Assembly: GCA_051530055.1 (NCBI GenBank)
Contig: JBMGUZ010000023.1
Location: 1-35,166, forward strand
DNA: 35,166 nucleotides
Direction: 5' to 3'
From: Neoechinorhynchus agilis
Taxonomy: Eukaryota > Animalia > Acanthocephala
Shown here: positions 4,064 through 33,289 of the stretch, one piece after another
How the letters are laid out: every line of letters starts with the position of its first letter
Position numbering within the stretch: the first letter of the stretch is position 1
Notes under the pieces: generated by a model
Seen by the model: only the letters and a program-made list of their open reading frames with translations
What the model was told of the DNA's origin: nothing
Databases searched by the model: none
Made by a program: the position numbers and the translations under genes

Positions 4064-4755
4064 ATGTCTACGGAGCCTTCCTTTTCCTGTCGACTTCCTC
4101 GTCCACAGGAGCCGATCTTTTCCGCGGTTTTGTGTGACCAAAAGAATATTAAACTGCCGCATTCGATTATATTAGAAGGCACTTCGGTTTCCGCCAATGA
4201 GAGAAACGGAGAACCATAAATAGCATCGTGCATTGGGCATTATTCTGAACAGCAAGCGCGGAGTGTTATGGAAAAACTGCGCTTTTGCTCTAAACGAAGA
4301 AATTTTTGTTTTTAAAAGTCCCGATTTTTGTAGCGAAGAGCATGTAAGAAATTTAAACCATCTTGGATAAAATGGAAGCTCAATCGGTATTTGTTTTAGA
4401 GTAATCTTTGAAATGGTTTTAAGTTTATGAGTGCTGTGAACTCGAGTTGTAGGCAAAAAATCTGTTCTTGATTCGTTACAAAATCAGTAATAAAAATTTG
4501 AATAATAATCGAAATGCCGCAGCGCTCAGAGATATCCGAGAAGGGCCATCCGAAGAAGTTGTTGATAAAGAGCAAGGATTTTATGAACAATGTTACAATG
4601 TTTTTCACAAAAAGGCGTTCCCATTCTATGAAACAATCGACTATATGCGGGATTTTTGCAATATAATTGGAATTCAAGCCAGAAAAACTTTCCTGATTTC
4701 AAGGAAACACTCGACGAATTGTTGCGGCGAAAGTGTGATTGTTAATGCGATTTAG
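4064..4755 (+). pseudogene. Coding-like sequence of unknown family, interrupted by stops or unresolved introns
   Basis: ATG 4064 reads MSTEPSFSCRLPRPQEPIF...GEP* and continues in a protein-like frame. ORF 4468-4755 follows. No recognisable motif. Confidence 0.25.
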
Positions 4756-5539
4756 AAACAATTGAAACGGGGAAAACAAGGGAGCAAACTTATATGAGCT
4801 TTTATATTTACATTCAAGCGATAGGAAGACCAAATCTGTGTTTATAAGTAAAAATTAGATGTTTCAAAGAATCTAAAAATAAATGTATAAGCATTTTGTA
4901 TCGAAAATAGACAAGTCTTGATTTTCAGAGGCTACGAGGTTAAGAAAAAATTAACTGGACGGAACATGGATTTGTAACGAACAAATTTAAACAAAGCATT
5001 GCAATCGCTTTAATCGGTGTCGCCGAAACGTGATTTCTGTCTGGTGCTCTGAATGTTAAAGTGAAGAAACTCATTGAGGCGCAAGGAAACGACGGACGTA
5101 ATTATGAATTTCTCAGCAGCTTTGCGATATGGTCATGCTCTCCCTAAAAATTCCTTTCTGTGATGGGACCCTTCAATCAAATCCTCAACGAGAGAATAAG
5201 CGAAATTTTCAAAATGCTTGGTTTGTACTTTTGGTAAAATTCAACGTTTTTAAATGTTCATACAAATTTCATCGTCGCACTTTAATTTTTTAATCATTTT
5301 AAAGATTTCAAACTCTCTGAAATAATCTGCCTGTTGATTATCAAGAACATAATAATCGAAATTATAGCAGCGATTTTATATTTATGAGGCGCTAAAACGG
5401 AATAAAAACATGTAATTAAAGCCAGAATTCGATAATCCAACTTTAACGTAAGACTCAAAACTGTGTAATAATTTTATTTACAGAAAACACAGAAACTCTT
5501 GCAGCGTTTTAAGCAGCATTAAAAATCGAACAAACTCGC

Positions 5540-6711
5540 CTAGTTGTTCAGTTGCGAGTCGTCCATTGTATTGGCGTCTTCGCCATTTTGTTCATTCGTT
5601 GTATCCACTGATTCTTCGTTTGATTTTTCAAAGACCAACAAATGCGATAAAGATTTTTCCAATGGTTTCAATCCATACGACTTTTTAATCGATAGCTTCA
5701 CCACAAATGATTGTCGCGAAACGTCGTAGCCAATAATCTTTGCGATTAGTCGTTCCTTTTGTGCGAATCGAGTGTCCATTTGCCGAAACCGATACTCTAA
5801 CGGTCCTTGAGCCATTTCTTTAGTTGAACATCCATCCAAATGACACTTAAAAATCGTCTTTCGAATAGCGAGTATCGATGGGGAAGCAACGTAGCACATT
5901 AATTTAGAAACAAACCGTATCTTTCCGGAATCTACTTCTTCGACAAGAAATCTATGACCCTGGTCCTCCAGGATCTTTACTCTTTTGAATGATTTATCGG
6001 AATCTTTGACGAGACAATAATGGCCAGGATAAAGTTCTCTCGATACCTCCTCAGCATGACGTCCATTTAAATTAATCAATTCTCGATTCAGATAAGTTCG
6101 CCATTCCTGGACCATTGGGTTATAAAAATATTTTCAATGTTGCAGAAGTGCACCAGCTTATAAATAATTTCGATATTAATCAAATATTTGCCGTCCTCGT
6201 CCTTTCTTATAAAATCACAAAAGACAGTCCCTTCAAATGCTGCCTCAGGAACTTGTGAGTGGTTTTGATTTGCAAGTACGGAATTGCCATCTTGGTTTTC
6301 CAATTTCAGTTTACATGGAAGGGCCAGCCTTGGAATGGAGTTGAAGATTCTTTTAACCGGTCGTAGATTTACTAATGGAAGCCACTCTTGGTGACCGTAA
6401 TCAATGTAAAAGACTTTGAATGAAGATGTCAGAATATTCACTTCTGTAATTTGACCTCGGTACCACTTTCCGTCCACAAGGGACTTGCCAATACATTTGG
6501 AATTAAGACCATACACAAGAAATTGATTGAAACGAAGAGATTCATAAACATTTCGTAGACCGATCTCAAGATCCAATCGATTTTTGAAGATTAAATTTGG
6601 TAGAAGGTAAATATTTTGAGTATTATCCATGTAACTGACTTGACAATAGACTGAATCTTGTAGAGAAACTATAAACTGCGGGTAATCCGCTGGAGGTACA
6701 AAAGTGCTCAT
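5540..6711 (-). CDS. Two-domain extended-Tudor (TDRD-like) protein, copy A, with a net -1 frameshift near 6113
   Basis: DGKWYRGQI...KVFYIDYGHQE...IPRLALPCKL is an extended Tudor signature, and a second degenerate Tudor follows. CAATGGTCCAG here versus CAATTTGTCCAG in copy B splits it into ORFs 6088-6711 and 5540-6115. Confidence 0.85.
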
Positions 6712-6851
6712 TATTGATGATTTTCTGTAAGAATAATTTTAGTCAAGAAGCCGATCTAACTGTATACTTTCAAAGATAGAAGCAATATAAAGCTTTTGAG
6801 TGAAAAGAATTAGGGGGGTACTCTATCTTGCTAAGCGTTATAAAATTTCAG

Positions 6852-6859
6852 CCAATCAG
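6852..6859. promoter_or_regulatory. CCAAT box (CCAATCAG) upstream of the Tudor gene; same element at 9184-9191 in copy B
   Basis: Exact CCAATCAG ~140 nt upstream of the ATG. The same 8-mer lies upstream of Six (29985-29992, reverse) and of the dynein gene (32763, 33102). NF-Y role is inferred. Confidence 0.5.
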
Positions 6860-7869
6860 CGTGTGCATAACAGCGGGGCACCGGTATAAAATAGGAAATA
6901 AACCCTAAAAATAATTAATCATCACGTGCCGCTTTTTTTAACCGTGTAATGGACGCTTTATCTTTGAATTTAATTATATATTTTGTTTGAATTACTAATT
7001 TGTTTTACACCCTTTGGATTTTTATATCATCACCAGGTTGTTATTTTAAGCGATTTCTGTAGAAGTTATTTAAATTATCATTTTATTTAATTATTTGCTC
7101 AAATGGTGCATATAAATTGCTTTCTTTATTTTTAAGGGTAAGTATCAATTTCAATAGTGAGAATAAATGGCATGAGACTCTTATCTTAAATGTGTGATTT
7201 TGTTTCTCATTTTTAAAACGGTCTCCAGCTGTGAATTGCATGCTGATTGGCTTAATTTTCAATATGGCAAGCAATAATCCTCAAAAAAAATTAACTGGAC
7301 GAAACATGGATTTGTAACGAACAAATTTAAAAGCATTGCGATAGCTTTAATCGGTGTCGCCGAAACGTGATTTCTGTCTGGTGCTCTGAAGTGAAGAAAC
7401 TCATTGAGGCGCAAGGAAACGACGGACGTAATTATGAATTTCTCAGCAGCTTTGCGATATGGTCCTGCTCTCCCTAAAAATTCCTTTCTGTGATGGGACC
7501 CTTCAATCAAATCCTCAACGAGAGAATAAGCGAAATTTTCAAAATGCTTGGTTTGTGCTTTTGGTAAAATTCAACGTTTTTAAATGTTCATACAAGTTTC
7601 ATCGTCGCTCTCTAATTTTTTAATCATTTTAAAGATTTCAAACTCTCTGAAATAATCTGCCTGTTGATTATCAAGAACATAATAATCGAAATTATAGCAG
7701 CGATTTTATATTTATGAGGCGCTAAAACGGAATAAAAACATGTAATTAAAGCCAGAATTCGATAATCCAACTTTAACGTAAGACTCAAAACTGTGTAATA
7801 ATTTTATTTACAGAAAACACAGAAACTCTTGCAGCGTTTTAAGCAGCATTAAAACTCGAACAAACTCGC

Positions 7870-9043
7870 CTAGTTGTTCAGTTGCGAGTCGTCCATTGTA
7901 TTGGCGTCTTCGCCATTTTGTTCATTCGTTGTATCCACTGATTCTTCGTTTGATTTTTCAAAGACCAACAAATGCGATAAAGATTTTTCCAATGGTTTCA
8001 ATCCATACGACTTTTTAATCGATAGCTTCACCACAAATGATTGTCGCGAAACGTCGTAGCCAATAATCTATGGCGATTAGTCGTTCCTTTTGTGCGAATC
8101 GAGTGTCCATTTGCCGAAACCGATACTCTAACGGTCCTTGAGCCATTTCTTTAGTTGAACACCCATCCAAATGACACTTAAAAATCGTCTTTCGAATAGC
8201 GAGTATCGATGGAGAAGCAACGTAGCATATTAATTTAGAAACAAACCGTATCTTTCCGGAATCTACTTCTTCGACAAGAAATCTATGACCCTGGTCCTCC
8301 AGGATCTTTACTCTTTTGAATGATTTATCGGAATCTTTGACGAGACAATAATGGCCAGGATAAAGTTCTCTCGATACCTCCTCAGCGTGACGTCCATTTG
8401 AATTAATTAATTCTCGATTCAGATAAGTTCGCCATTCCTGGACAAATTGGGTTATAAAAATATTTTCAATGTTGCAGAAGTGAACCAGCTTATAAATAAT
8501 TTCGATATTAATCAAATATTTGCCGTCCTCGTCCTTTCTCATAAAATCACAAAAGACATTCCCTTCAAACGCTGCCTCGGGAACTTGTGAGTAGTTTTGA
8601 TTTGCAAGTACGGAATTGCCATCTTGGTTTTCCAATTTCAATTTACATGGAAGGGCCAGCCTTGGAATGGAGTTGAAGATTCTTTTAACCGGTCGTAGAT
8701 TTACCAATGGAAGCCACTCTTGGTGACCGTAATCAATGTAAAAGACTTTGAATGAAGATGTCAGAATATTCACTTCTGTAATTTGACCCCGGTACCACTG
8801 TCCGTCCACAAGGGACTTGCCAATACATTTGGAATTAAGACCATACACAAGAAATTGATTGAAACGAAGAGATTCATAAACATTTCGTAGACCGATCTCA
8901 AGATCCAATCGATTTTTGAAGATTAAATTTGGTAGAAGGTAAATATTTTGAGTATTATCCATGTAACTGACTTGACAATAGACTGAATCTTGTAGAGAAA
9001 CTATAAACTGCGGGTAATCCGCTGGAGGTACAAAAGTGCTCAT
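7870..9043 (-). CDS. Two-domain extended-Tudor (TDRD-like) protein, copy B, with a +1 frameshift near 8072
   Basis: 342-aa ORF 8015-9043 covers both Tudor domains. GCCATAGATT versus GCAAAGATT in copy A shifts the C-terminus. The corrected CDS is 1173 nt (390 aa), ending at TAG 7870-7872. Confidence 0.87.
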
Positions 9044-10094
9044 TATTGATGATTTTCTGTAGGAATAATTTTAGTCAAGAAGCCGATCTAACTGTATACT
9101 TTCAAAGATAGAAGCAATATAAAGCTTTTGAGTGAAAAGAATAAAGGGGATACTTTATCTTGCTAAGCGTTATAAAATTTCAGCCAATCAGCGTGTGCAT
9201 TGCAGCGGAGCACAGGTGTAAAATAGGAAATAAACCCTAAAGATAATTAATCATCACGTGCCGCTTTTTTTAACAGTGTAATGGACGCTTTATCTTTGAA
9301 TTTAATTATATATTTTGTTTGAATTGCTAATTTGTTTTACACCCTTTGGATTTTTATATCATCACCAGGTTGTTATTTTAAGCGATTTCTGTAGAAGTTA
9401 TTTAAATTATCATTTTATTTAATTATTTGCTAAAATGGTGCGTATAAATTGCTTTCTTTATTTTTAAGGGTAAGTATCAATTTCAATAGTGAGAATAAAT
9501 GGCATGAGACTCTTATCTTAAATGTGTGATTTTGTTTCTCATTCTTAAAACGGCATCCAGCTGTGAATTGCATGCTGATTGGCTTAATTTTCAATATGGC
9601 ATGCAATAATCCTCAAAAAAAAATTAACTGGACGAAACATGGATTTGTAACGAACAAATTTAAAAGAAGCATTGCGATAGCTTTAATCGGTGTCGCCGAA
9701 ACGTGATTTCTGTCTGGTGCTCTGAATGTTAAAGTGAAGAAACTCATTGAACGTTAGGAAACGATGCTGCTCCGAGACTTAGACTTTCGAGGAAGATAAA
9801 AGAAGTCTCGCTAAATTACGACACTTCAAACTCACGAAAAAATAGAGAAACTCAACGTCGCAATGTACGAAATAAAGAGAAGACTTTATATAAATGATTA
9901 TTACGTTTGATGAAGTTCAAATCAAAGTGATTTTGGAAACATTTTAACGCTGAAAAACTTTGTGAGTGGATTTCGATGTTTTCGCCGCAACAAAACTAAA
10001 AAAGTGACTAACAGCTTTAAGCCGAAGACAGCGATTAAGTTCGTTACAAATCGCGCAAGTTGATGGCCATAACATCCAATAAACACTGTGAGCT

Positions 10095-12222
10095 TTAGTA
10101 TTTATTTCGCAAAACCGCCGGTACGGTGAGTTCTTCGCCCGCTAACAAATCTTGAACGGTGAAAAGAGCCAATGTTTGCCTTTCCGTTCCATTAGATTTA
10201 AAGTGAACCTTCTGAACGAACAAATTGGGATTGCTCTGAGAGCGATGAAAAATATGAGACACGTTGGTGATCGACGCTACGTTTCCATTTCTCTCCTTAT
10301 CGCTGTCCAGTTGACAAACAAAATAACCCTTTGGAAGATCGTGGTTCACACGGACACCCAATCTTTTAGTTCTATGAACAAATACCTCCAAATAAGCTCG
10401 AATTCCTTGGCTGACCAATGTGTTTGGACAGTGCCCTGGACATTTACACGCATCGCCACATTCTTGAACTCCTCGTGGAATTCCACCTTCGGGCAATCTC
10501 AAATATTCGTAAGTATTTTGCTTCGAAGTCAGTGTGTTTTCTAAACTAAAATGCTCGCAAACCGGAGAAATGTAATGTAAATGAAGCATACGAAAAACTC
10601 GAATATGGATCTGTGAATTTAAGATTTAAATAATCAATCTTTACGATTGCTTTACGTAGATCCTTTTTTAGTTTAGGTAAAATATCTTAGATTCTACGAT
10701 AAAAAAACGAATTTCATTCTTAAATAGATCTGTAAATTTTCTGAAGGTATCAATTATTGCATTTTAGTATCCGGCAATTCTTCAAAATTAACGTAGAATT
10801 CAATGGGAAGTTTAATCCATGGTGCGAATTGCATTTGTTTAGACTAAACGCCACTCTTTTAAACTCGCCTAACGCCAACATTTGAGAGCATTTCTAGGTA
10901 TCAAATTTGGCGAAACTTGCGAGGATCCTGGTAGACGATAGAAAACATTCACATCAAAATGACAACGATGCTCATTGCAGAGTGGAATTTCTTTTCTTTC
11001 CAGACCATTCGAAATATCTTTATCCACGACATTTTTCCCGCTTCCAGCGTACTCATAATCGATGTCCACATTTTCTTGGAAAGTAAATAAATCGATCGAT
11101 AAATGTGACCTTGTCGTTTCCAACTGTTCGAAAACTTGACGGATTTTGTAGAATGATCGAAAACAAGGCGATACGTAGACAACTTTTTTGGTCGTCCCGG
11201 TTCGATTTATCATGCGTTTCCAACCGTAGATTAAAAGGAATGTGAAACGGATTGAATGGTCGTCTGTCGTTCAATAGATCAATAACACCAGGTCGTCCGT
11301 CCGTATAGATCAAATCAATCAATGGAGCGCATTTAAAGGAGCAGATATGGTCGTTTGATTTTATTCTTGCTTCCGGAAACATCATTCTATGCCGGGCGCC
11401 TAATCGTTTCAATGTATCAACATAATCAAATCTCACTCTGGATGAAGAAAGCTCTGATCGATGCCTCGGTTTCGGCAACAAATTCTCGTTTGTTGGTTTA
11501 CAAGGATCGTCCATAATGCAAACACAGTCAGTAGAAGTTTCGCTTTCATTCAAACTTTGTTGGTCGGAAAGCGGAAACATAATTTCTTCTTTTTTGCTTT
11601 TGAATAATGATTGAATCATTCGTATTCTATGGGAACCACGAAACACCCAAACCGGAGTTTCATTCTCAACACTAACCAGCATCATTGATCCATCAACTTC
11701 ATTCACAATGGCATTTCTCCATTGATCCGATTGCTCAGCCATGAATTCTAATTTAGAACCAATTGTAACTGCGATCAGTAGACGATTTTGAGTGAAATAC
11801 AGACTAAGGAATATCTCGAATTCATCAGGTAGGCGCGATAAGTGAACCGGAATTCTCATTTTTCCACAGCACGTCCTAATTTGGGAGACGTGGACGTATT
11901 TGGCGAATCCATTAAGGAAAAAAACCAAATATCGATAACTATTCAGGGCGTTTGGGAGTTCCGCAATAACTGCATCGCCCATTTCATTGTATTCATCCGT
12001 TTGAACAACACAGCGAGTCTCATGACTGTGCTGTGGCCATGATTCGTCAGTTGGAACGTTTATCTGATCAACTGCAACAAGAACATTACTTACCCGAATA
12101 TCACAATGCTTCTTGTAATTTGGAAGGATACTCAAGACCTCTGACCCCTTGAAAGTGCACTTAAAGTCCACGTCGTAATCCGTCATTATCATCGGATCAA
12201 ATGGTCGCTTAGATGACATCAT
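10095..12222 (-). CDS. SETDB1: SETDB1/eggless-like protein (Tudor domains, MBD, partial pre-SET, degenerate SET)
   Basis: AELPNALNSYRYLVFFLNGFAKYV and EVDGSMM...WVFRGSHRI match the SETDB1 Tudor region. GWKRM..VYVSPC..IDLFTF is an MBD. DISNGLE is the pre-SET start. ECGDACKC..CPNTLVSQG..LEVF..GVR..DLPKGYFVC..PNLFVQ..LAGEELT is a SET domain. One extra T in run 11233-11236 breaks PLIYGW. Structure at 10610-10870 is unresolved. Confidence 0.9.
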
Positions 12223-12474
12223 CTATAAAATATGAGATGAAGGGTTTTTTAAGCGTTGGTGGTTAATAAGTGGCTATCTTATTCTTGGACTCTTATTCTT
12301 TTGATTTTTTTGATAATTTCTGCAAATTGCATTCTAAGAAAAACAACCAATAAAAAGCGATCTCACAGAAACCAAAACCACGTCGCATTTACAAATAATT
12401 TTTCGTTAAACAAAAAATTGTTAATAAAATCCAAGTTCTGCTTGATTAGTTAAATTCACTTTGCAGCGGCCACC

Positions 12475-12986
12475 ATGTTTTCTTTTCGAAAACAGTCGCC
12501 AAAAATAGCAGCCAATTACGATGTACGTGATTTTTCACTAATCAAATCGGGCATCATTCGACATTACAGTCGAGGATCCTCATGTTCCTGCCTTGGGAAG
12601 CCACCTTCGAGGACCCATTCGGCAATCAATGAGCCGGAAAATGGTACACCTACGATCCAGCCAATGAAAATTTGACTGCATAACGGGACCTTCTAGAACA
12701 GAACGTTCGTTAAACCGCGAGACCTTTGACAAAACTAGGAAATTTGATCATGGAGGTTAGCGATGACCATCTCGACGAAATCCCGTGGACACTCCTTCTC
12801 GAGTTCGCTATCCGCGACGCAACCTACAACCTCTTTAGGCTCTGTAGGCTCCAAAAGTCCTCCAGGTAAGCGCTCGAAAGACGGAGACGCTCAAAAGCCG
12901 AAAAGTTCGACTGCTTGCATATTGTGGTAAGCTCCATTGTCCGGACAATGCTCCGTGATATACAGCCGGAAAGGAGAGGTTTGTGA
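12475..12986 (+). pseudogene. GC-richer coding-like segment with a candidate 47-nt intron and several in-frame stops; identity unknown
   Basis: ATG 12475 and GTACGT...TTACAG at 12523-12569 (47 nt). The spliced frame reads ...MFLPWEATFEDPFGNQ*AGKWYTYDP...MEVSDDHLDEIPWTLLLEF with four stops. Confidence 0.25.
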
Positions 12987-13031
12987 CCATTCATTCAAGT
13001 TTCCGACCATTCTCCATAGTGGCTACTTTAT

Positions 13032-15343
13032 TTAACCCCAGGGATGCTGTTTTTTCAATCCGTTAAATATCAGTCTTTCAATTTCCTTATCAAGTTCCTT
13101 GCTTCGCCTTTTGTTTGCCTTTATGGCCGTCACAGTTTCCACGTAATTCTGGAAATAAAGAATTTTACAGCGCTATCAAGAGAATGTAGCAAACCTTTCG
13201 AACTGCTTCGGTATACACAGTGAGCATTTCCTTTGTGTTCAACTCTGATAGCTCTTCAGCAGTCATTTTATCGATCTGATCAGCTTTGATTGGACTCTCG
13301 GCAGTAACCAACTCCTTCAATATCAATCTTAGATGTGAACAGAGACCATCTCGTTTTCTTAGAAAGTCATCGTAATCGCTTTGGGTTTCTCCATTTGATG
13401 CATTGGCGGATTCCTCGGGTTTATGATCAACAATTTGTTGTTCAGACACCCTTGGTTCACTTTTGACCGCAATAATTTCCTTCTTTGGTACTACTTCCAC
13501 TTTCTTTTTTGATGGGGACCTTTTAGCCGGTGCTTCCTTATCCTTTTCATTCTTCTTATGAGCAATTAAACCACGTTGGATATCCATCCCGATAGTCATT
13601 GCATTACAGTTCGCTTGGCGTGGATCTGGATGCATTCTACATTCCCAATCGATCGAAAGTCTTTCATTTAGATCCAGTGAACCTAATGGAAGTACACGCC
13701 ACTTTAAACATTTATCACATTGAACCGCAATCTTCAGCTTCTTATTTCTTCGTTCCACAAACTCGGGTTCGTTTCTTGGCTCCAATTCTCTACTCCAATC
13801 ATTGTTCAAACAATATCCATATCGCTGCCAAAACATATTCTGATCTTCTTTATAGTATCCAATATCAGTTACATAACTGGTCATAAAGTCATAGAGAACT
13901 TTAAGAAGATATCGATACTCTCGCCCATGAGCAAAATTCTGTTTATTATGCATCGGTTCAATAATGGTCGGTGGAAGGTTTACGACAGCGACCACGCCGG
14001 GGAACGAGATATTGCAAGTGTTTGAACCTGGATAAGACCTTTCGTACATACGAATCAATCGATTAGCATTGTAAACAAACGCACCGTCTCGTCTTCTATT
14101 CTGGATATTAACACCGAAATGAAATTTAATCTCCATTGGGCAATTCAATATTGTCTGACGCTGTTCAACTTGCATTCTACAAGATACTCTGGCTCATGAA
14201 GACTAGCTCAGAATTTCTTTTTACGTTTTAAGACTACTTTTTGTTGATCATCTAGTAATAGTTTTAATTTGCCCGTCTCAAAGGACAAATCTTCCTTATT
14301 CGCTTCATTTTGATTTAACTCATCTATTTTCTTTTCGGTATCAAGAGCTCGTTCCTCGGCGAGTTTCAATTCATTCTTAGCAAAATACAACTCCTTTTCA
14401 GCTCTTTTCCGAAATCTATCGGAATTGTAGATGTATTCACGGGGTTCATAGAGAGTATAGATGATTCGTGTACTCCTTACTTTCTTTCCTTGAATTGTCA
14501 GTCTCATTGATGGATTGTAGTAGAGAATAGAGACATAATGTCGAAGAGATCGTCGTTCAGGACAAAGTGCCAAATCTTCTAACGTATTACCTGGATTTGC
14601 AATTAAAATATCATTCTTTTGCGAACTAATGTCAAGCTCAGTGGTTCCGGTTGAAACGAGTTTAAGATTGTAGACAACAATCAAAGTCCCGGAACTTCCT
14701 TGTATTTTGTCGAATTGAGCCATAAAATTCGTTGTGTCATAAGGGCTATATTGGTAAATTATGTTCATTTCAAAGTTGTGAATAAGAAGCGATTTTCCAT
14801 CATTGAGTACGGGTTGAAGTGTCGATGCATCGAAAACTGGAAGAGGAACAACTACTTGTTCAATTCCTTCACTCTCATGGAACGTTCGAGAAAGCATCAG
14901 ACAAGACAGTAACCCGTCTTTTTTGGTGAACAATAACATATCGTTACCTATCCTCATCGTGCCTGATTTAAGACCATTTCCATATTGACCGATTGCTTGC
15001 AAGTTCGTTGAACGTTTTGTTGATTTACCGAACGATACAACTCCCATTGTCTCCGATGGGTTCATTCCACATCCATTGTCAAGAAAACACAAGGAAAAAC
15101 CTCCTCTTACCGAACAATGCAACTCAGTGTAAATGTGAAGGTCGGTAGATTGAGCATCCAGAGAATTATCTATCAGCTCAGCCATGGCACCAAATAAAAA
15201 CTCATGAGTTGTCCTGTAAATCAAAATATTATAAAACATTTTCAGAGTTTAGAGACCTACGAGTTTGAATGAAGGTATTCTATGGTCAATTGAGCTTTGT
15301 GAAGCATTGCATATCGGTCTCGAATTCGAAATTTTGACTCCAT
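13032..15343 (-). CDS. MORC2: MORC1/2-type GHKL ATPase with coiled-coil insertion and CW zinc finger; 4 exons
   Basis: Exon 1 15261-15343 reads MESKFRIRDRYAMLHKAQLTIEYLHSNS. A 47-nt intron (15214-15260) joins it to TTHEFLFGAMAELIDNSLDA. GHKL motifs DNGCGM, GQYGNGLKSG and GTLIVVYNL are intact. CW finger QCDKCLKWR..W.C.MHPDP..C. A 46-nt intron (13149-13194) leads to a last exon ending TAA 13032-13034 overlapping AATAAA. The junction at 14161-14237 is ambiguous. Confidence 0.95.
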
Positions 15344-15375: not shown

Positions 15376-18300
15376 CGACTTCCAGTTTTGCCATGGGGCC
15401 GAGATCCGGGATTAGGCGACCGGATCTCGTCGGTAACACTCGAAGGGGTCCTCATCCAGACGAATCCGAGGCGGTCAATGTCAGCGATTTAAATAGACTT
15501 TCCCGTTGTGGAAAACTCTAAAATAGCTAACATGCCAGTTGGGATTTCGAGATTCCTTACGCCCTGAACTTTAGTAAGCGAAAAAAGGGGAACTTTGGTG
15601 GTAGTCCTCAACGGTGATCCAGAATCCACCGAGATTGGGACCACCGCAACCGTCAATCTCCACCATCTTTCGAACTTCCAGTTTTGCCATGGGGCCGAGA
15701 TCTGAGATTAGGCGACAGGATCTCGTCGGTAACACTCGAAGGGGTCCTCATCCAGACGAATCCGAGGCGGTCAATGTCAGCGATTTAAATAGACTTTCCC
15801 GTTGTGGAAAACTCTAAAATAGCTAACATGCCAGTTGGGATTTCGAGATTCCTTACGCCCTGAACTTTAGTAAGCGAAAAAAAGGGGAACTTTGGTGGTA
15901 GTCCTCAACGGTGATCCAGAATCCACCGAGATTGGGACCACCGCAACCGTCAATCTCCACCATCTTTCGAACTTCCAGTTTTGCCATGGGGCCGAGATCT
16001 GGGATTAGGCGACCGGATCTCGTCGGTAACACTCGAAGGGGTCCTCATCCAGACGAATCCGAGGCGGTCAATGTCAGCGATTTAAATAGACTTTCCCGTT
16101 GTGGAAAACTCTAAAATAGCTAACATGCCAGTTGGGATTTCGAGATTCCTTACGCCCTGAACTTTAGTAAGCGAAAAAAGGGGAACTTTGGTGGTAGTCC
16201 TCAACGGTGATCCAGAATCCACCGAGATTGGGACCACCGCAACCGTCAATCTCCACCATCTTTCGAACTTCCATTTTGCCATGGGGCCGAGATCTGAGAT
16301 TAGGCGACCGGATCTCGTCGGTAACACTCGAAGGGGTCCTCATCCAGACGAATCCGAGGCGGTCAATGTCAGCGATTTAAATAGACTTTCCCGTTGTGGA
16401 AAACTCTAAAATAGCTAACATGCCAGTTGGGATTTCGAGATTCCTTACGCCCTGAACTTTAGTAAGCGAAAAAAGGGGAACTTTGGTGGTAGTCCTCAAC
16501 GGTGATCCAGAATCCACCGAGATTGGGACCACCGCAACCGTCAATCTCCACCATCTTTCGAACTTCCAGTTTTGCCATGGGGCCGAGATCTGGGATTAGG
16601 CGACCGGATCTCGTCGGTAACACTCGAAGGGGTCCTCATCCAGACGAATCCGAGGCGGTCAATGTCAGCGATTTAAATAGACTTTCCCGTTGTGGAAAAC
16701 TCTAAAATAGCTAACATGCCAGTTGGGATTTCGAGATTCCTTACGCCCTGAACTTTAGTAAGCGAAAAAAGGGGAACTTTGGTGGATCCTCAACGGTGAT
16801 CCAGAATCCACCGAGATTGGGACCACCGCAACCGTCAATCTCCACCATCTTTCGAACTTCCAGTTTTGCCATGGGGCCGAGATCTGGAATTAGGCGACAG
16901 GATCTCGTCGGTAACACTCGAAGGGGTCCTCATCCAGACGAATCCGAGGCGGTCAATGTCAGCGATTTAAATAGACTTTCCCGTTGTGGAAAACTCTAAA
17001 ATAGCTAACATGCCAGTTGGGATTTCGAGATTCCTTACGCCCTGAACTTTAGTAAGCGAAAAAAAGGGAACTTTGGTGGTAGTCCTCAACGGTGATCCAG
17101 AATCCACCGAGATTGGGACCACCGCAACCGTCAATCTCCACCATCTTTCGAACTTCCATTTTGCCACGGGGCCGAGATCTGAGATTAGGCGACAGGATCT
17201 CGTCGGTAACACTCGAAGGGGTCCTCATCCAGACGAATCCGAGGCGGTCAATGTCAGCGATTTAAATCAACTTTCCCGTTGTGGAAAACTCTAAAATAGC
17301 TAACATGCCAGTTGGGATTTCGAGATTCCTACGCCCTGAACTTTAGTAAGCGAAAAAAGGGGAACTTTGGTGGTAGTCCTCAACGGTGATCCAGAATCCA
17401 CCGAGATTGGGACCACCGCAACCGTCAATCTCCACCATCTTTCGAACTTCCAGTTTTGCCATGGGGCCGAGATCTGAGATTAGGCGACCGGATCTCGTCG
17501 GTAACACTCGAAGGGGTCCTCATCCAGACGAATCGAGGCGGTCAATGTCAGCGATTTAAATAGACTTTCCCGTTGTGGAAAACTCTAAAATAGCTAACAT
17601 GCCAGTTGGGATTTCGAGATTCCTTACGCCCTGAACTTTAGTAAGCGAAAAAAGGGGAACTTTGGTGGTAGTCCTCAACGGTGATCCAGAATCCACCGAG
17701 ATTGGGACCACCGCAACCGTCAATCTCCACCATCTTTCGAACTTCCATTTTGCCACGGGGCCGAGATCTGAGATTAGGCGACCGAATCTCGTCGGTAACA
17801 CTCGAAGGGGTCCTCATCCAGACGAATCCGAGGCGGTCAATGTCAGCGATTTAAATAGACTTTCCCGTTGTGGAAAACTCTAAAATAGCTAACATGCCAG
17901 TTGGGATTTCGAGATTCCTTACGCCCTGAACTTTAGTAAGCGAAAAAAGGGGAACTTTGGTGGTAGTCCTCAACGGTGATCCAGAATCCACCGAGATTGG
18001 GACCACCGCAACCGTCAATCTCCACCATCTTTCGAACTTCCAGTTTTGCCATGGGGCCGAGATCTGGGATTAGGCGACAGGATCTCGTCGGTAACACTCG
18101 AAGGGGTCCTCATCCAGACGAATCCGAGGCGGTCAATGTCAGCGATTTAAATAGACTTTCCCGTTGTGGAAAACTCTAAAATAGCTAACATGCCAGTTGG
18201 GATTTCGAGATTCCTTACGCCCTGAACTTTAGTAAGCGAAAAAAGGGGAACTTTGGTGGTAGTCCTCAACGGTGATCCAGAATCCACCGAGATTGGGACC

Positions 18301-21300
18301 ACCGCAACCGTCAATCTCCACCATCTTTCGAACTTCCAGTTTTGCCATGGGGCCGAGATCTGGGATTAGGCGACGGATCTCGTCGGTAACAATCCAGACG
18401 AATCCGAGGCGGTCAATGTCAGCGATTTAAATAGACTTTCCCGTTGTGGAAAACTCTAAAATAGCTAACATGCCAGTTGGGATTTCGAGATTCCTTACGC
18501 CCTGAACTTTAGTAAGCGAAAAAAGGGGAACTTTGGTGGTAGTCCTCAACGGTGATCCAGAATCCACCGAGATTGGGACCACCGCAACCGTCAATCTCCA
18601 CCATCTTTCGAACTTCCAGTTTTGCCATGGGGCCGAGATCTGGAATTAGGGGACAGGATCTCGTCGGTAACACTCGAAGGGGTCCTCATCCAGACGAATC
18701 CGAGGCGGTCAATGTCAGCGATTTAAATAGACTTTCCCGTTGTGGAAAACTCTAAAATAGCTAACATGCCAGTTGGGATTTCGAGATTCCTTACGCCCTG
18801 AACTTTAGTAAGCGAAAAAAAGGGAACTTTGGTGGTAGTCCTCAACGGTGATCCAGAATCCACCGAGATTGGGACCACCGCAACCGTCAATCTCCACCAT
18901 CTTTCGAACTTCCAGTTTTGCCATGGGGCCGAGATCTGAGATTAGGCGACAGGATCTCGTCGGTAACACTCGAAGGGGTCCTCATCCAGACGAATCCGAG
19001 GCGGTCAATGTCAGCGATTTAAATCAACTTTCCCGTTGTGGAAAACTCTAAAATAGCTAACATGCCAGTTGGGATTTCGAGATTCCTTACGCCCTGAACT
19101 TAGTAAGCGAAAAAAAGGGAACTTTGGTGGTAGTCCTCAACGGTGATCCAGAATCCACCGAGATTGGGACCACCGCAACCGTCAATCTCCACCATCTTGA
19201 ACAGTTTTGCCATGGGGCCGAGATCTGAGATTAGGGGACGAATCTCGTCGGTAACAATCCAGACGAATCCGAGGCGGTCAATGTCAGCGATTTAAATAGA
19301 CTTTCCCGTTGTGGAAAACTCTAAAATAGCTAACATGCCAGTTGGGATTTCGAGATTCCTTACGCCCTGAACTTTAGTAAGCGAAAAAGGAACTTTGGTG
19401 GTAGTCCTCAACGGTGATCCAGAATCCACCGAGATTGGGACCACCGCAACCGTCAATCTCCACCATCTTTCGAACTTCCAGTTTAGCCACGGGGCCGAGA
19501 TCTGAGATTAGGCGACGAATCTCGTCGGTAACAATCCAGACGAATCCGAGGCGGTCAATGTCAGCGATTTAAATAGACTTTCCCGTTGTGGAAAACTCTA
19601 AAATAGCTAACATGCCAGTTGGGATTTCGAGATTCCTTACGCCCTGAACTTTAGTAAGCGAAAAAAGGGGAACTTTGGTGGTAGTCCTCAACGGTGATCC
19701 AGAATCCACCGAGATTGGGACCACCGCAACCGTCAATCTCCACCATCTTTCGAACTTCCAGTTTTGCCATGGGGCCGAGATCTGGGATTAGGCGACAGGA
19801 TCTCGTCGGTAACACTCGAAGGGGTCCTCATCCAGACGAATCCGAGGCGGTCAATGTCACGATTTAAATAGACTTTCCCGTTGTGGAAAACTCTAAAATA
19901 GCTAACATGCCAGTTGGGATTTCGAGATTCCTTACGCCCTGAACTTTAGTAAGCGAAAAAAAGGGAACTTTGGTGGTAGTCCTCAACGGTGATCCAGAAT
20001 CCACCGAGATTGGGACCACCGCAACCGTCAATCTCCACCATCTTTCGAACTTCCAGTTTTGCCATGGGGCCGAGATCTGGAATTGGGGACAGGATCTCGT
20101 CGGTAACACTCGAAGGGTCCTCATCAGACGAATCCGAGGCGGTCAATGTCAGCGATTTAAATAGACTTTCCCGTTGTGGAAAACTCTAAAAAAACATGCC
20201 AGTTGGGATTTCGAGATTCCTTACGCCCTGAACTTTAGTAAGCGAAAAAAGGGGAACTTTGGTGGTAGTCCTCAACGGTGATCCAGAATCCACCGAGATT
20301 GGGACCACCGCAACCGTCAATCTCCACCATCTTTCGAACTTCCAGTTTTGCCACGGGGCCGAGATCTGAGATTAGGCGACCGAATCTCGTCGGTAACACT
20401 CGAAGGGGTCCTCATCCAGACGAATCCGAGGCGGTCAATGTCAGCGATTTAAATAGACTTTCCCGTTGTGGAAAACTCTAAAATAGCTAACATGCCAGTT
20501 GGGATTTCGAGATTCCTTACGCCCTGAACTTTAGTAAGCGAAAAAAAGGGGAACTTTGGTGGTAGTCCTCAACGGTGATCCAGAATCCACCGAGATTGGG
20601 ACCACCGCAACCGTCAATCTCCACCATCTTTCGAACTTCCAGTTTTGCCACGGGGCCGAGATCTGAGATTAGGCGACCGAATCTCGTCGGTAACACTCGA
20701 AGGGGTCCTCATCCAGACGAATCCGAGGCGGTCAATGTCAGCGATTTAAATAGACTTTCCCGTTGTGGAAAACTCTAAAATAGCTAACATGCCAGTTGGG
20801 ATTTCGAGATTCCTTACGCCCTGAACTTTAGTAAGCGAAAAAAGGGGAACTTTGGTGGTAGTCCTCAACGGTGATCCAGAATCCACCGAGATTGGGACCA
20901 CCGCAACCGTCAATCTCCACCATCTTTCGAACTTCCAGTTTTGCCATGGGGCCGAGATCTGGAATTAGGGGACAGGATCTCGTCGGTAACACTCGAAGGG
21001 GTCCTCATCCAGACGAATCCGAGGCGGTCAATGTCAGCGATTTAAATAGACTTTCCCGTTGTGGAAAACTCTAAAATAGCTAACATGCCAGTTGGGATTT
21101 GGAGATTCCTTACGCCCTGAACTTTAGTAAGCGAAAAAAGGGGAACTTTGGTGGTAGTCCTCAACGGTGATCCAGAATCCACCGAGATTGGGACCACCGC
21201 AACCGTCAATCTCCACCATCTTTCGAACTTCCAGTTTTGCCATGGGGCCGAGATCTGAGATTAGGCGACGAATCTCGTCGGTAACAATCCAGACGAATCC

Positions 21301-22110
21301 GAGGCGGTCAATGTCAGCGATTTAAATAGACTTTCCCGTTGTGGAAAACTAAAATAGCTAACATGCCAGTTGGGATTTCGAGATTCCTTACGCCCTGAAC
21401 TTTAGTAAGCGAAAAAAAGGGAACTTTGGTGGTAGTCCTCAACGGTGATCCAGAATCCACCGAGATTGGGACCACCGCAACCGTCAATCTCCACCATCTT
21501 TCGAACTTCCAGTTTTGCCACGGGGCCGAGATCTGAGATTAGGCGACGAATCTCGTCGGTAACAATCCAGACGAATCCGAGGCGGTCAATGTCAGCGATT
21601 TAAATCAACTTTCCCGTTGTGGAAAACTCTAAAATAGCTAACATGCCAGTTGGGATTTCGAGATTCCTTACGCCCTGAACTTTAGTAAGCGAAAAAAGGG
21701 AACTTTGGTGGTAGTCCTCAACGTGATCCAGAATCCACCGAGATTGGGACCACCGCAACCGTCAATCTCCACCATCTTTCGAACTTCCAGTTTGCCAGGG
21801 GCCGAGATCTGAGATTAGGCGACGATCTCGTCGGTAACAATCCAGACGAATCCGAGGCGGTCAATGTCAGCGATTTAAATAACTTTCCCGTTGTGGAAAA
21901 CTCTAAAATAGCTAACATGCCAGTTGGGATTTGGAGATTCCTTACGCCCTGAACTTTAGTAAGCGAAAAAAGGGGAACTTTGGTGGTAGTCCTCAACGGT
22001 GATCCAGAATCCACCGAGATTGGGACCACCGCAACCGTCAATCTCCACCATCTTTCGAACTTCCAGTTTTGCCACGGGGCCGAGATCTGAGATTAGGGGA
22101 CCGAATCTCG
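15376..22110. repeat. Tandem satellite-like array, ~296 bp unit (a ~280 bp deletion subfamily also present), ~23 units
   Basis: The gcca(t/c)gggg anchor recurs 24 times from ~15390 to ~22070. Units are near-identical, differing mainly in an A/G run, a few SNPs and a 16-nt deletion variant. GC content is visibly higher than the flanks. Confidence 0.99.
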
Positions 22111-25818: not shown

Positions 25819-26089
25819 ACTATCGTCTAACTGCAAACTTTTTTTAATCTTTAAGAACGATCAAAGATCGATGTGATCGTTAGGATGTTTTAACAGTTTA
25901 GATTTTCTTTGTCAAAAGGCAAAATGTCAAGAATTCGAGATGTTCATTTATGGGCTTTTATCATTTTTTACTATTATTTCCATTGGCTAATCGAGAACAT
26001 TGCTTATTCGAATTTATCTCATTCAGAATCTTTGACCTACTTATTGTGCAGGTTTGGCAATTGACGAAAATTGAATTTTAATTTACAAA

Positions 26090-26778
26090 TCTCTCAGGAG
26101 CATTTGGAGGCATGCAATTGAGAATTTGTTTTGAGCTTTCCTCAGAAGAGTCATCTGAATTCCTTTTCCGGAATATTTTTGTACCGGAAGAGAAATTCGG
26201 CCGAAACAATTCATTGAGAATTTCAGGCTTGTTTTCGTGCTTGTTTTTTTTATAAAAGTAGCCGTAATTATTTTTTAAAGCGTGACTTTGCAAGTTTCTA
26301 GCTAAAGAAATGTCTTATTATCTCCAGGGAGCATTTGGAAACCTGCAATTGACAATTTGTTTCGAGCTTTCCTCAGAAGAGTCATCTGAATTCATTCTCC
26401 GGAATATTTTTGTACCGGAAGAGAAATTCGGCCGAAACAATTCATTGAGAATTTCAGGCTTGTTTTCGTGCTTGTTTTTTTATAAAAGTAGCCGTAATTA
26501 TTTTTTAAAACGTGACTTTGCAAGTTTCTAGCTAAAGAAATGTCTTATTATCTCCAGGGAGCATTTGGAAACCTGCAATTGACAATTTGTTTCACGTGAT
26601 TTGCAAGTTTCTACTAAGAAATGTCTTATTATCTCCAGGGAGCATTTGGAAACCTGCAATTGACAATTTGTTTCGAGCTTTCCTCAGAAGAGTCATCTGA
26701 ATTCATTCTCCGGAATATTTTTGTACCGGAAGAGAAATTCGGCCGTAACAATTCATTGAGAATTTCAGGCTTGTTTTC
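26090..26778. repeat. Tandem repeat, ~231 bp unit: 2 full, 1 internally deleted and 1 partial copy
   Basis: tctc(tc/c)aggga anchor at ~26090, 26321, 26551 and 26632. On the minus strand it duplicates a coding-like stretch (ENKPEILNELFRPNFSSGTKIF..SDDSSEESS). Confidence 0.92.
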
Positions 26779-28973: not shown

Positions 28974-29359
28974 TTCGCCATTGAGAATTGCGTTTAATGG
29001 TTAGATATCGAAAAATTTATGCGTCGATTTTTAGAAAGCCTCCCTCTAAATATTTTTATTGGTTTAAACTAATTTTTTTCAAAACAAACGAATATAACAT
29101 TTATTTCATTTAACCTAAGGAAATATTACAAAGAGTTTCTTTTTTAAATATTTTTCAATTCGTTAATTTGATTTTTTCGCCATTGAGAATTGCGTTTAAT
29201 GGTTAGATATCGAAAAATTATGCGTCGATTTTTAGAATGCCTCCATCTAAATATTTTTATTGGTTTAAAGTAATTTTTTTACAAAACAAACAAATATAAC
29301 ATTTATTTCATTTAACCTAAGGAAATATTACAAAGAGTTTCTAAATATTTTTCAATTCG
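28974..29359. repeat. Direct duplication, period ~202 bp, non-coding
   Basis: ttcgccattgagaattgcg at 28974 and 29176. The copies match to caattcg. Confidence 0.93.
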
Positions 29360-30737: not shown

Positions 30738-30810
30738 AAAAATGCGCAATTGATTGATCAATTATTGCCTTTTTGGTCTTTTGTGTACGCTCTAACATTT
30801 AATATATGCA

Positions 30811-31608
30811 TCTCTGTAGTAAAACATTTTTAAGCGAATAAGTTTTTTAATTTTCCACGAAGGGAGAGCATTTGATTTATTTTTCAAACTCGCTACGGGC
30901 ACTGAATTAATCGCTGATTATTAAATGGCTATTTTTCGAAATCAATTTTAATTTCTTTATGTACGTTTTAATCTCTGTAGTAAAAATTTTTAAACGAATA
31001 AGTTTTTTCAATTTTCCACGAAGGGAGAGCATTTGATTTATTTTGAAAACTCGCTACGGGCACTAAATTAATCGCTGATTATTAAATGGCTATTTTTCGA
31101 AATCAATTTTAATTTCTTTATGCACGTTTTAAGATTTAATAAATTCATCCCTATAGTAAAATTTTCTTAAACGAATAAGTTTTTTAAATTTTCCACGAAA
31201 GGAGAGCATTTGATTTATTTTGCAAACTCGCTACGGGCACTGAATTAATCGCTGATTATTAAATGGCTATTTTTCGAAATCAATTTTAATTTCTTTATGC
31301 ACGTTTCAAGATTTAATAAATTCATCCCTATAGTAAAATTTTCTTAAACGAATAAGTTTTTTAAATTTTCCACGAAAGGAGAGCATTTGATTTATTTTGC
31401 AAACTCGCTACGGGCACTGAATTAATCGCTGATTATTAAATGGCTATTTTTCGAAATCAATTTTAATTTCTTTATGCACGTTTTAAGATTTAATAAATTC
31501 ATCTCTGTAGTCAAAAAATTTAAACAAATAGATTTTTTAATTTTCAACGAAAGGAGAGCATTTGATTTATTTTGCAAACTCGCTACGGGCACTGAATTAA
31601 TCGCTGAT
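30811..31608. repeat. AT-rich tandem repeat, 161-177 bp unit, ~4.6 copies, immediately 3' of Six
   Basis: Unit starts at 30811, 30972, 31148, 31325 and 31502, with shared core aactcgctacgggcactgaattaatcgctgat. Confidence 0.95.
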
Positions 31609-32520: not shown

Positions 32521-33188
32521 TAAAATAAAACATTACGAACGTTTTGTTTAAAAGAACTTTTGCCTTTTTTTACGTCTTTTAAAAAGAAACCGACGAGTCC
32601 AAATCGCTGATGGTAGAGTTGAGTCAACGGTTAATTTCGAAGACCTGATTTTTCCTTTCAACCTTTTATTGACTTTTATGAGTGATCTAAATTTTAATAA
32701 CCACTTAAAAGTTTAATTAGAATTGCACATTTTTGCTATCCCAATAAGGGTTTCTAAGACAACCAATCAGAAAAAAATTAATTTTTTTATCCATTTGATC
32801 AACGAATCAGACAAAAGATTGAGACATAACCCGTCGCAAAAACGTAATTCACGAAAAAGCTAAAATAAAACATTACCAACGTTTTGTTTAAAAGAACTTT
32901 TGCCTTTTTGACGTCTTTTAAAAAGAAACCGACGGGTCCAAATCGCTGATGGTAGAGTTGAGTCAACGGTTAATCTTGAAGACCTGATTTTTCCTTTCAA
33001 CCTTTTATTGACTTTTATGAGTGATCTAAATTTTAATAACCACTTAAAAGTTTAATTAGAATTGCACATTTTTGCTATCCCAATAAGGGTTTCTAAGACA
33101 ACCAATCAGAAAAAAATTAATTATTTTATCCATTTGATCAACGAATCAGACAAAAGATTGAGACATAACCCGTCGCAAAAACGTAATT
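32521..33188. repeat. Direct duplication, period 340 bp, covering the putative dynein promoter
   Basis: taaaataaaacattac at 32521 and 32861. Each copy has cccaataagg and ccaatcag. Confidence 0.95.
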
Positions 33189-33289
33189 GACGAGACGAGC
33201 TTCTCAATTCACTGCATCGGTAATCATGAAAACTTGAAAATATATTGAAAACACTTTATAGCAGACAAAAAAACACAGTTTCTATGGAG

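Follow-up and report, generated by a model that had tools for sequence, protein, structure and literature searches.

A probable copy of a lineage-specific, segmentally duplicated cassette of silencing-family genes beside a single-copy MORC2-like gene in Neoechinorhynchus agilis

The DNA analysed here, referred to throughout as the window, is the complete unplaced contig C23 (35,166 bp) of the acanthocephalan Neoechinorhynchus agilis. Four genes on its minus strand, between 5540 bp and 15343 bp, encode a MORC2-like ATPase, a SETDB1-like protein and two Tudor proteins. We consider it likely that this block is one copy of a lineage-specific cassette of silencing genes that has multiplied by segmental duplication, this copy lying against a unique MORC gene. 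A preliminary description had listed four minus-strand genes of chromatin or silencing families in the block, and their positions, strand and family assignments were all borne out by Pfam and PDB matches. The number of independent families was three rather than four, as the two Tudor genes represent one recent tandem duplication. The satellite that had been placed beside the block was also present. The features of the block and its edges are listed below by their positions in the window:

4071-4133, minus strand: what remains of the fourth cassette gene, 21 codons from its 3′-end (tblastn, 90% identity); the full gene encodes 494 amino acids
4942-9750: tandem duplication of a 2.33-kb Tudor unit, with three copies of a repeat of ~136 nt at 4942-5077, ~7272-7407 and 9615-9750
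5540-6711, minus strand: Tudor gene copy 1 (Tudor1; TUDOR, E = 4e-15), split into open reading frames (ORFs) of 207 and 191 codons
7870-9043, minus strand: Tudor gene copy 2 (Tudor2; TUDOR, E = 5e-19), with an extended Tudor (eTudor) domain and a weak second Tudor domain
10095-12222, minus strand: SETDB1-like gene overall, with a triple Tudor, a weak MBD and a degenerate pre-SET/SET
10095-10610, minus strand: last exon of the SETDB1-like gene, with a pre-SET tail and a compact SET (23.1 bits); acceptor ...ttcacag at 10611
10872-11231, minus strand: MBD-like exon part in the ancestral frame (99% amino acid identity to the C13 copy)
11053-12222, minus strand: N-terminal ORF of the SETDB1-like gene, 389 codons, annotated as P0005; Tudor_5/Tudor_4, matching SETDB1 and Eggless Tudor structures
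11233-11236, minus strand: run of four T with a +1 insertion (three T in paralogues; alignment of seven copies)
12223-13031, minus strand: spacer of 809 nt between the MORC and SETDB1-like genes; the cassette ends inside it, at ~12458, and beyond 12458 there is no genome match
13032-15307, minus strand: single-copy MORC2-like GHKL ATPase gene of ~701 codons with open exons (Pfam, PDB MORC2)
15378-22110: satellite of 296 bp in ~23 copies, beginning 71 nt upstream of the MORC ATG

The N. agilis assembly is 46.2 Mb in size and comprises three chromosome-size scaffolds, C1 (19.4 Mb), C2 (16.4 Mb) and C3 (7.8 Mb), and 99 small contigs. Duplications were mapped by a genome-wide DNA search and by blastn and tblastn over 190 kb of paralogous loci. 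This revealed the region between 4332 bp and 12458 bp of the window to be a member of a segmental-duplication family, with the following matches:

4332-11236: C13, 97-98% identity
7664-10471: C26 and C2 at 7.347 Mb, 96% identity
9615-12266: C2 at 11.706 Mb, 91% identity
smaller pieces of the window: C28, C2 at 7.30, 7.32 and 7.337 Mb, C3 at 4.168 Mb and C2 at 1.47 Mb, 75-99% identity

The same co-oriented order recurred among these loci, namely a SETDB1-like gene (usually its 3′ part only), a Tudor gene, an Argonaute gene and an ORF of 494 codons. The SETDB1-like, Tudor and Argonaute genes were found in this order, variously truncated, on C13, C26 and C28 and on C2 at 7.315, 7.34-7.35 and 11.70-11.72 Mb. 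Co-inheritance, which the preliminary description had suggested for the whole block, was seen for the SETDB1-like and Tudor genes, which occur together (elsewhere with the Argonaute gene) in at least five other places by segmental duplication. It did not extend to the MORC gene, which is not part of the duplicating unit and was linked to the cassette only at this locus. The region between 12459 bp and 15400 bp of the window had no DNA match elsewhere in the genome; neither the MORC gene nor the 0.6 kb below it, both immediately beyond the edge of the duplicated block, is present in a second copy.

The window copy of the cassette is without an Argonaute gene. Elsewhere this gene was found intact and intronless, encoding a Piwi domain (E = 1e-76), on C13 and on C2 at 11.716 Mb:

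L017:6615-9557 (C13:16615-19557), minus strand: intact cassette Argonaute gene, 980 codons
L030:5810-8752 (C2:11715810-11718752), plus strand: intact cassette Argonaute gene, 980 codons

The encoded protein belongs to the AGO clade, with matches to human AGO1-4 at ~1e-66 as against 1e-35 to PIWI, and its N-terminal tail is rich in RG/RGG. The Argonaute family was present at eight or more loci (at least eight) that shared 58-95% identity, the C36 locus being at 58%. On C26 the N-terminus of the Argonaute (N-domain) was fused to the 494-codon cassette ORF in a chimera (L020:6545-8447, minus strand). Pfam analysis of the fourth cassette gene and of three other co-duplicated ORFs revealed nothing significant, with faint Med26/TFIIS-N matches at E = 0.23-4. 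The preliminary description had connected the SETDB1-like and Tudor genes with piRNA pathways, a reading that is weakened by the Argonaute travelling with the cassette being of the AGO clade and not a PIWI protein. N. agilis itself retains PIWI genes and ping-pong piRNAs and is without DNMT1/3, and a small-RNA silencing system is still present in this species (PMC12256650).

The cassette genes appeared to be specific to the lineage, as had been proposed. In word-limited searches, which were also bound by length limits, no relatives of the SETDB1-like protein or of the Argonaute were found outside N. agilis. The sole outside match to the Tudor protein in the word-limited searches was a weak one in a mayfly (29% identity over 27% of the query, E = 6e-6).

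Outside the window, the 296-bp satellite was found only as two short arrays of 97-99% identity, at C2:6549906-6551275 and C2:6611378-6612956 (6.55 and 6.61 Mb). Two stretches of the same scaffold, C2:7.30-7.35 Mb and C2:7.93-7.95 Mb, together hold several cassette copies. From the satellite shared with C2 and the cassette copies nearby on that scaffold, the contig probably belongs to the repeat-rich region in the middle of C2.

Sequence reading and exon-wise translation showed the MORC gene to have four exons (15307-15261, 15213-14238, 14160-13195 and 13148-13032) separated by GT-AG introns of 47, 77 and 46 nt with compatible phases. All four exons are open and the coding sequence is uninterrupted. 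When the exons were translated and searched separately, one by one, against Pfam, exon 2 was found to encode HATPase_c_3 (3.9e-22) and the start of Morc6_S5, and exon 3 the rest of Morc6_S5 and a zf-CW domain (5.8e-13); the Morc6_S5 matches were at 5e-9 and 1e-5. Exon 2 matched human MORC2 structures at 4e-92, with 52% identity in the ATPase module. The ATP-binding motifs (N-box, G1 and G2) were retained, with ELIDN, DNGCGM and GQYGNGLKSG aligning with human MORC2. The alignment with MORC2 reached the coiled-coil CC1 (query positions 280-308), and the insert extended to residue ~325 of exon 2.

The sole other MORC gene of N. agilis, which we treat as the canonical one, lies at C2:14.97 Mb and shares 53-56% amino acid identity in the ATPase part. 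No cassette genes were found within 10 kb on its 5′-end side or within ~6.6 kb on the other side. A 21-row tree of the ATPase region was made, in which 20 of the 150 listed matches were used (the ten named top matches and a spread of unnamed ones). The two N. agilis MORC proteins were sisters in this tree (support 94/93), which suggests that the gene was duplicated once the lineage had parted from Pomphorhynchus. P. laevis has a single MORC gene, which spans 52 kb and has an MFS transporter as its sole called neighbour. The linkage of MORC with the other families was not seen in this one relative, as tblastn over the 72 kb of the P. laevis MORC locus gave no match to the SETDB1-like protein, the Tudor protein or AGO.

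The N-terminal ORF of the SETDB1-like gene had a Tudor_5 match of 32.1 bits (cut-off 31) and a Tudor_4 match of 23.3 bits (cut-off 25.8) in Pfam, and its Tudor module matched those solved for human SETDB1 (3e-11) and for fly Eggless (1e-7). Residues 330-389 of P0005 are an out-of-frame tail. Four other SETDB1-like copies have three T at the position of the four-T run, and without the extra T the Tudor frame continues into the GW.R start of the MBD. The annotated product ends at 389 amino acids because of this frameshift. In the ancestral frame the GW.R...Y.SPC pattern of the MBD was readable, and the domain scored 17.7 bits, under the Pfam cut-off of 21. The pre-SET zinc cluster was not retained, with only the last CxC...C segment left (17.1 bits against a cut-off of 29.1). 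Alignment with SETMAR, EHMT1 and SUV39H2 revealed the catalytic motifs to be replaced, GWG by RLG, NHSC by RSQS and ELxFDY by ELTVPA; the ORF finishes six codons past ELTVPA and has no post-SET cysteines. The SETDB1-like protein is predicted from these replacements to be catalytically dead.

The canonical SETDB1 gene of N. agilis (C1:10.514-10.516 Mb) is 31-39% identical to the SETDB1-like gene, and no MORC, Tudor or AGO gene was found within ~4.5 kb on either side of it. A 57-codon Argonaute-like match (C1:10563058-10563228) lies 47 kb from the canonical SETDB1 (C1:10514454-10515956) and may represent one exon from a canonical AGO gene. The ratio of non-synonymous to synonymous substitution rates (dN/dS) of the SETDB1-like gene was 0.30-0.35 relative to the old C3 copy (dS ~0.4) and 0.46-0.84 among the recent copies. 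The other copies carry stops and indels, with at least six stops in the copy at C2:11.706 Mb, and the window copy is the only one in the genome with an open N-terminal ORF. These values mark the family as one that was once constrained and is now mostly decaying, its copies being for the most part pseudogenes.

The two Tudor units of the window are 97-99% identical. The eTudor domain covered nearly the full PF00567 profile (positions 7-120/121, E = 5e-19), and it matched the eTudor domains of SND1, fly Tudor, TDRD1 and TDRKH in PDB. A second, degenerate Tudor domain in the C-terminal half was weakly supported (E = 0.034; self-comparison E = 0.72). In an alignment with SND1, three of the four aromatic residues that, together with an Asn, we take to form the aromatic cage were retained; the first position was a Leu and the Asn of the GN pair was a His. 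Intact copies of 399 codons were found on C13, on C26 and on C2 at 7.348 Mb. The Tudor family as a whole comprised at least seven recent copies and four older paralogues at ~40% identity. At C2:7.32 Mb the Tudor gene was truncated by the insertion of a long interspersed nuclear element (LINE). A chimeric ORF with a LINE endonuclease-like N-terminus and the C-terminal half of Tudor (L024:4949-5575, minus strand; C2:7319949-7320575) is probably annotated as ACOME3_006343, judged by the contig and by a 96% match over 36% of the Tudor query.

The repeat of ~136 nt that bounds the Tudor units was also present in the copy at C2:11.70 Mb, where it occurs without Tudor. Within this repeat sits an interspersed repeat of ~95 nt (~9658-9752, also inside 4942-5077 and ~7272-7407), of which at least 30 copies with 84-88% identity were found on C1-C4; it looks like a miniature inverted-repeat transposable element or a short interspersed nuclear element.

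Three of the four window genes, Tudor1, Tudor2 and the SETDB1-like gene, each carry a private 1-nt frameshift in the assembly. Relative to the intact copies, a single T is missing from Tudor1 after 6112, and Tudor2 carries an additional C at 8070 that alters its last ~65 codons. Indels were otherwise rare, with two in 3.1 kb and six in 3.9 kb of paralogue alignments, so the contig is not riddled with errors. Among the Tudor copies dN/dS was 0.13-0.6, and between the two copies in the window there were 10 synonymous and 6 non-synonymous changes (dN/dS 0.16, P = 5e-4). These ratios indicate purifying selection on a Tudor family that would be functional now or have been so recently. Since the selection is seen between copies that are both frameshifted, the lesions should be either very recent or errors of the consensus.

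As we read these results, the full cassette would consist of a SETDB1 paralogue with a dead SET domain, an extended-Tudor protein, an intronless, RG-rich Argonaute of the AGO clade and a 494-amino acid protein of unknown fold. The window copy would have kept the most complete SETDB1-like gene, duplicated its Tudor unit in tandem and lost its Argonaute, and would abut an intact, single-copy and old MORC2-like paralogue outside the duplicating unit. The genes would be separate transcription units, with spacers of 0.8-1.2 kb and poly(A) signals of their own. Their linkage would stem from rapidly evolving silencing paralogues having arisen and been amplified together in a region prone to duplication. 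The family as a whole may serve small-RNA-guided silencing of heterochromatin in the manner of nuclear RNA interference (RNAi). The Tudor protein could dock on the neighbouring Argonaute at its methylated RG motifs, the dead-SET SETDB1 derivative could act as a reader of H3K9me/K14ac or as a scaffold, and the MORC2-like ATPase could compact the targets. That the products of the cassette and of MORC work together, as in nuclear RNAi of C. elegans or as mammalian HUSH, MORC2 and SETDB1 do, is possible and rather unlikely.

Several points weigh against the cassette reading. The function proposed for it is read from domains only, three of the four genes of the block have frameshifts in an assembly that is a hybrid and derives from pooled worms, and the adjacency of MORC is a single event. 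Additionally, C13 and C23 could be allelic structural variants instead of separate loci, and the shared satellite is the only ground for the placement on C2.

C. elegans has a pathway in which MORC-1, MET-2/SETDB1 and the nuclear Argonaute HRDE-1 work together, and mammalian MORC2 and SETDB1 act with HUSH. The N. agilis block resembles the mammalian system in having a MORC2-type ATPase with a coiled-coil insert beside a SETDB1-family protein with a triple Tudor, but its SETDB1-like protein is without NHSC, the Tyr, most pre-SET cysteines and the post-SET; moreover, the genes of the mammalian MORC2/SETDB1 axis are not known to be linked. It shares with C. elegans the same three families and an AGO-clade, non-PIWI Argonaute. 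The nuclear-RNAi genes of C. elegans are, as far as is known, dispersed, whereas the N. agilis paralogues are physically clustered and co-duplicated, and their function is a proposal here. The multiple recent AGO (at least eight loci) and Tudor copies of N. agilis recall the WAGO expansion of nematodes and the AGO/RdRP expansions of bdelloids, except that in N. agilis a multi-gene block of non-homologous partners expands rather than single genes. To our knowledge, clusters of genes that serve one pathway are rare in animals, tandem duplicates apart.

It was considered whether the block is a functional, co-regulated supergene, in which Argonaute, eTudor, SETDB1-like and MORC2-like genes are kept linked and co-expressed (for example in the germline) as a module in an arms race with transposons. 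Four functionally connected families adjoin in co-orientation, Tudor and AGO copies are constrained or intact, MORC is intact with its ATPase motifs, and the Argonaute with the RG-rich tail lies beside an eTudor gene. Chance clustering, which the preliminary description had raised, was assessed with a neighbourhood null, in which a run of MORC, SETDB1-family and Tudor genes had an expectation of ~1e-6 to 7e-6 under random gene order, a naive null applied to a single post hoc event. Under random order, the probability of MORC lying within 5 kb of any of ~20 cassette-type places was ~0.9%. The juxtaposition is unlikely to be random. The adjacency is nevertheless a single case, picked out post hoc from many scanned windows, and the recurrences of the cassette are copies and not independent events. 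Against a supergene, the link between MORC and the cassette was seen once, no copy holds all four families (the window has MORC and no Argonaute), the SETDB1-like gene, dead and frameshifted in this copy, is otherwise present only as pseudogenes or fragments, the older paralogues of each family are unlinked and the P. laevis MORC is without synteny. We regard a supergene of this kind as unlikely. The stronger form is a silencing supergene of divergent paralogues, in which an RG-tailed AGO-clade Argonaute, its eTudor partner, a dead SETDB1-derived chromatin reader and a MORC2-like ATPase would amplify together and stay linked through co-evolution against transposons. Such a supergene would be a rare animal cluster of non-homologous genes of one pathway, and it seems less likely still.

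The block could alternatively be a gene graveyard, a decaying and non-functional array in satellite-rich heterochromatin that serves at most as a template for small RNAs. Three private frameshifts within ~4.5 kb of coding sequence, where indels are otherwise rare, would fit such an array, as would the deletion of the Argonaute and the fourth gene from the window copy, the 6.7-kb satellite and the repeats flanking the block, and the cutting of other copies by LINEs or their fusion to neighbours. This account is made doubtful by the MORC gene, which is intact and single-copy, and by the N-terminal ORF of the SETDB1-like gene, the only open one in the genome. Moreover, Tudor2 loses only its C-terminal tail and the window Tudor pair has a dN/dS of 0.16.

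The junction of MORC and the cassette could also be due to chance or to a chimeric join in the assembly. At only 35 kb, the contig is short, unplaced and rich in repeats. Illumina and Oxford Nanopore Technologies reads from ~50 pooled worms were combined in a MaSuRCA hybrid assembly with Hi-C scaffolding (PMC12690905; the assemblers given are MaSuRCA/Flye). The junction between 12459 bp and 13031 bp is however unique, and the closest shared segment has only 81% identity to its paralogue, which leaves no high-identity repeat through which a false join could have arisen. An ordinary SIX homeobox gene is present on the contig as well. An artefact is very unlikely on this evidence.

The preliminary description had called the block possibly operon-like and had pointed to tttatag directly before the SETDB1-like ATG. 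This motif is present, and pyrimidine-rich ...AG motifs were found 0-15 nt upstream of the ATGs of the SETDB1-like gene, both Tudor genes, the cassette AGO and the C2 MORC, at the following acceptor-like positions:

12223-12240: upstream of the SETDB1-like ATG
9044-9070: upstream of the Tudor2 ATG
6712-6740: upstream of the Tudor1 ATG
L017:9558-9580: upstream of the cassette AGO ATG
L031:9401-9430: upstream of the C2 MORC ATG

These motifs could mark an undescribed acanthocephalan spliced leader (SL) and would equally fit introns in the 5′ untranslated region, or chance in AT-rich DNA. Nematode operons have spacers of roughly 100-400 nt. The spacers of the block, at 809, 1051 and 1158 nt, are several times longer. 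One AATAAA overlaps the MORC stop, and another follows each Tudor stop at a distance of 61 nt. The numbers of the ACOME3_ locus tags imply 10,600 or more annotated genes for the 46 Mb of sequence, or ~4 kb per gene, so spacers of 0.8-1.2 kb are ordinary for this genome. Bdelloid rotifers, which are relatives of acanthocephalans, trans-splice (PMC1925144, PMC3795323), and no SL was found in a survey of expressed sequence tags from monogononts (PMC1925144). The rotiferan (bdelloid-type) SL exon given in PMC3795323 was absent from the N. agilis genome at up to three mismatches, a search that a divergent SL could escape. A search of the open-access literature for spliced leaders in Acanthocephala gave only incidental co-occurrence. 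The block is like nematode-type SL operons in its co-oriented genes and in the acceptor-like motif before the ATG, and unlike them in its long spacers, its poly(A) signals and the failure to find an SL gene. The four genes look like separate units and not an obvious polycistron, and a single precursor resolved by SL trans-splicing at the acceptor-like sites is highly improbable.

If the block is read as a cassette copy, non-homologous partners in small-RNA and heterochromatin silencing are duplicated together, as one block, in a parasite whose genome is very reduced and which has kept its piRNAs. Should the copies be expressed together, they would form a natural system for the co-evolution of an Argonaute-Tudor pair and a pseudo-enzyme SETDB1 with transposons, and would allow a test of whether gene linkage helps arms-race modules. 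If they are not, they would be a textbook case of the birth-and-death evolution of duplicated silencing genes in DNA rich in repeats. The N. agilis gene models call for caution in either case, as they include truncated and chimeric products of cassette copies. The N. agilis transcriptome paper and one supplementary text file (~16 kb) did not mention MORC, SETDB1, Tudor or Argonaute.

Outside its genes the contig is highly repetitive, and an Rfam scan of the window gave no match. The retroelement debris noted in the preliminary description received modest confirmation from the region between 24415 bp and 24706 bp, which matched an ORF on the downstream side of an RVT_1 gene at another genomic site. 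The SIX-class homeobox ORF, which is of an ordinary type, lies between 30069 bp and 30737 bp on the plus strand (SIX1_SD, 1e-27, and a homeodomain). It is directly followed by a tandem repeat of 177 bp in 4.7 copies (30810-31608). Further tandem repeats were found at 1-876, 26089-26674, 28974-29342 and 32521-33193, with periods of 461, 231/81, 202 and 339 bp, respectively. One repeat family, whose members are 83-87% identical, occurs twice in the window, between 1428 bp and 2006 bp (minus strand) and between 23429 bp and 24157 bp (plus strand). It encodes an ORF resembling L017:4765-5679, which is itself without a Pfam match. The same family was also found 3 kb downstream of the canonical C2 MORC gene (L031:3472-4215).

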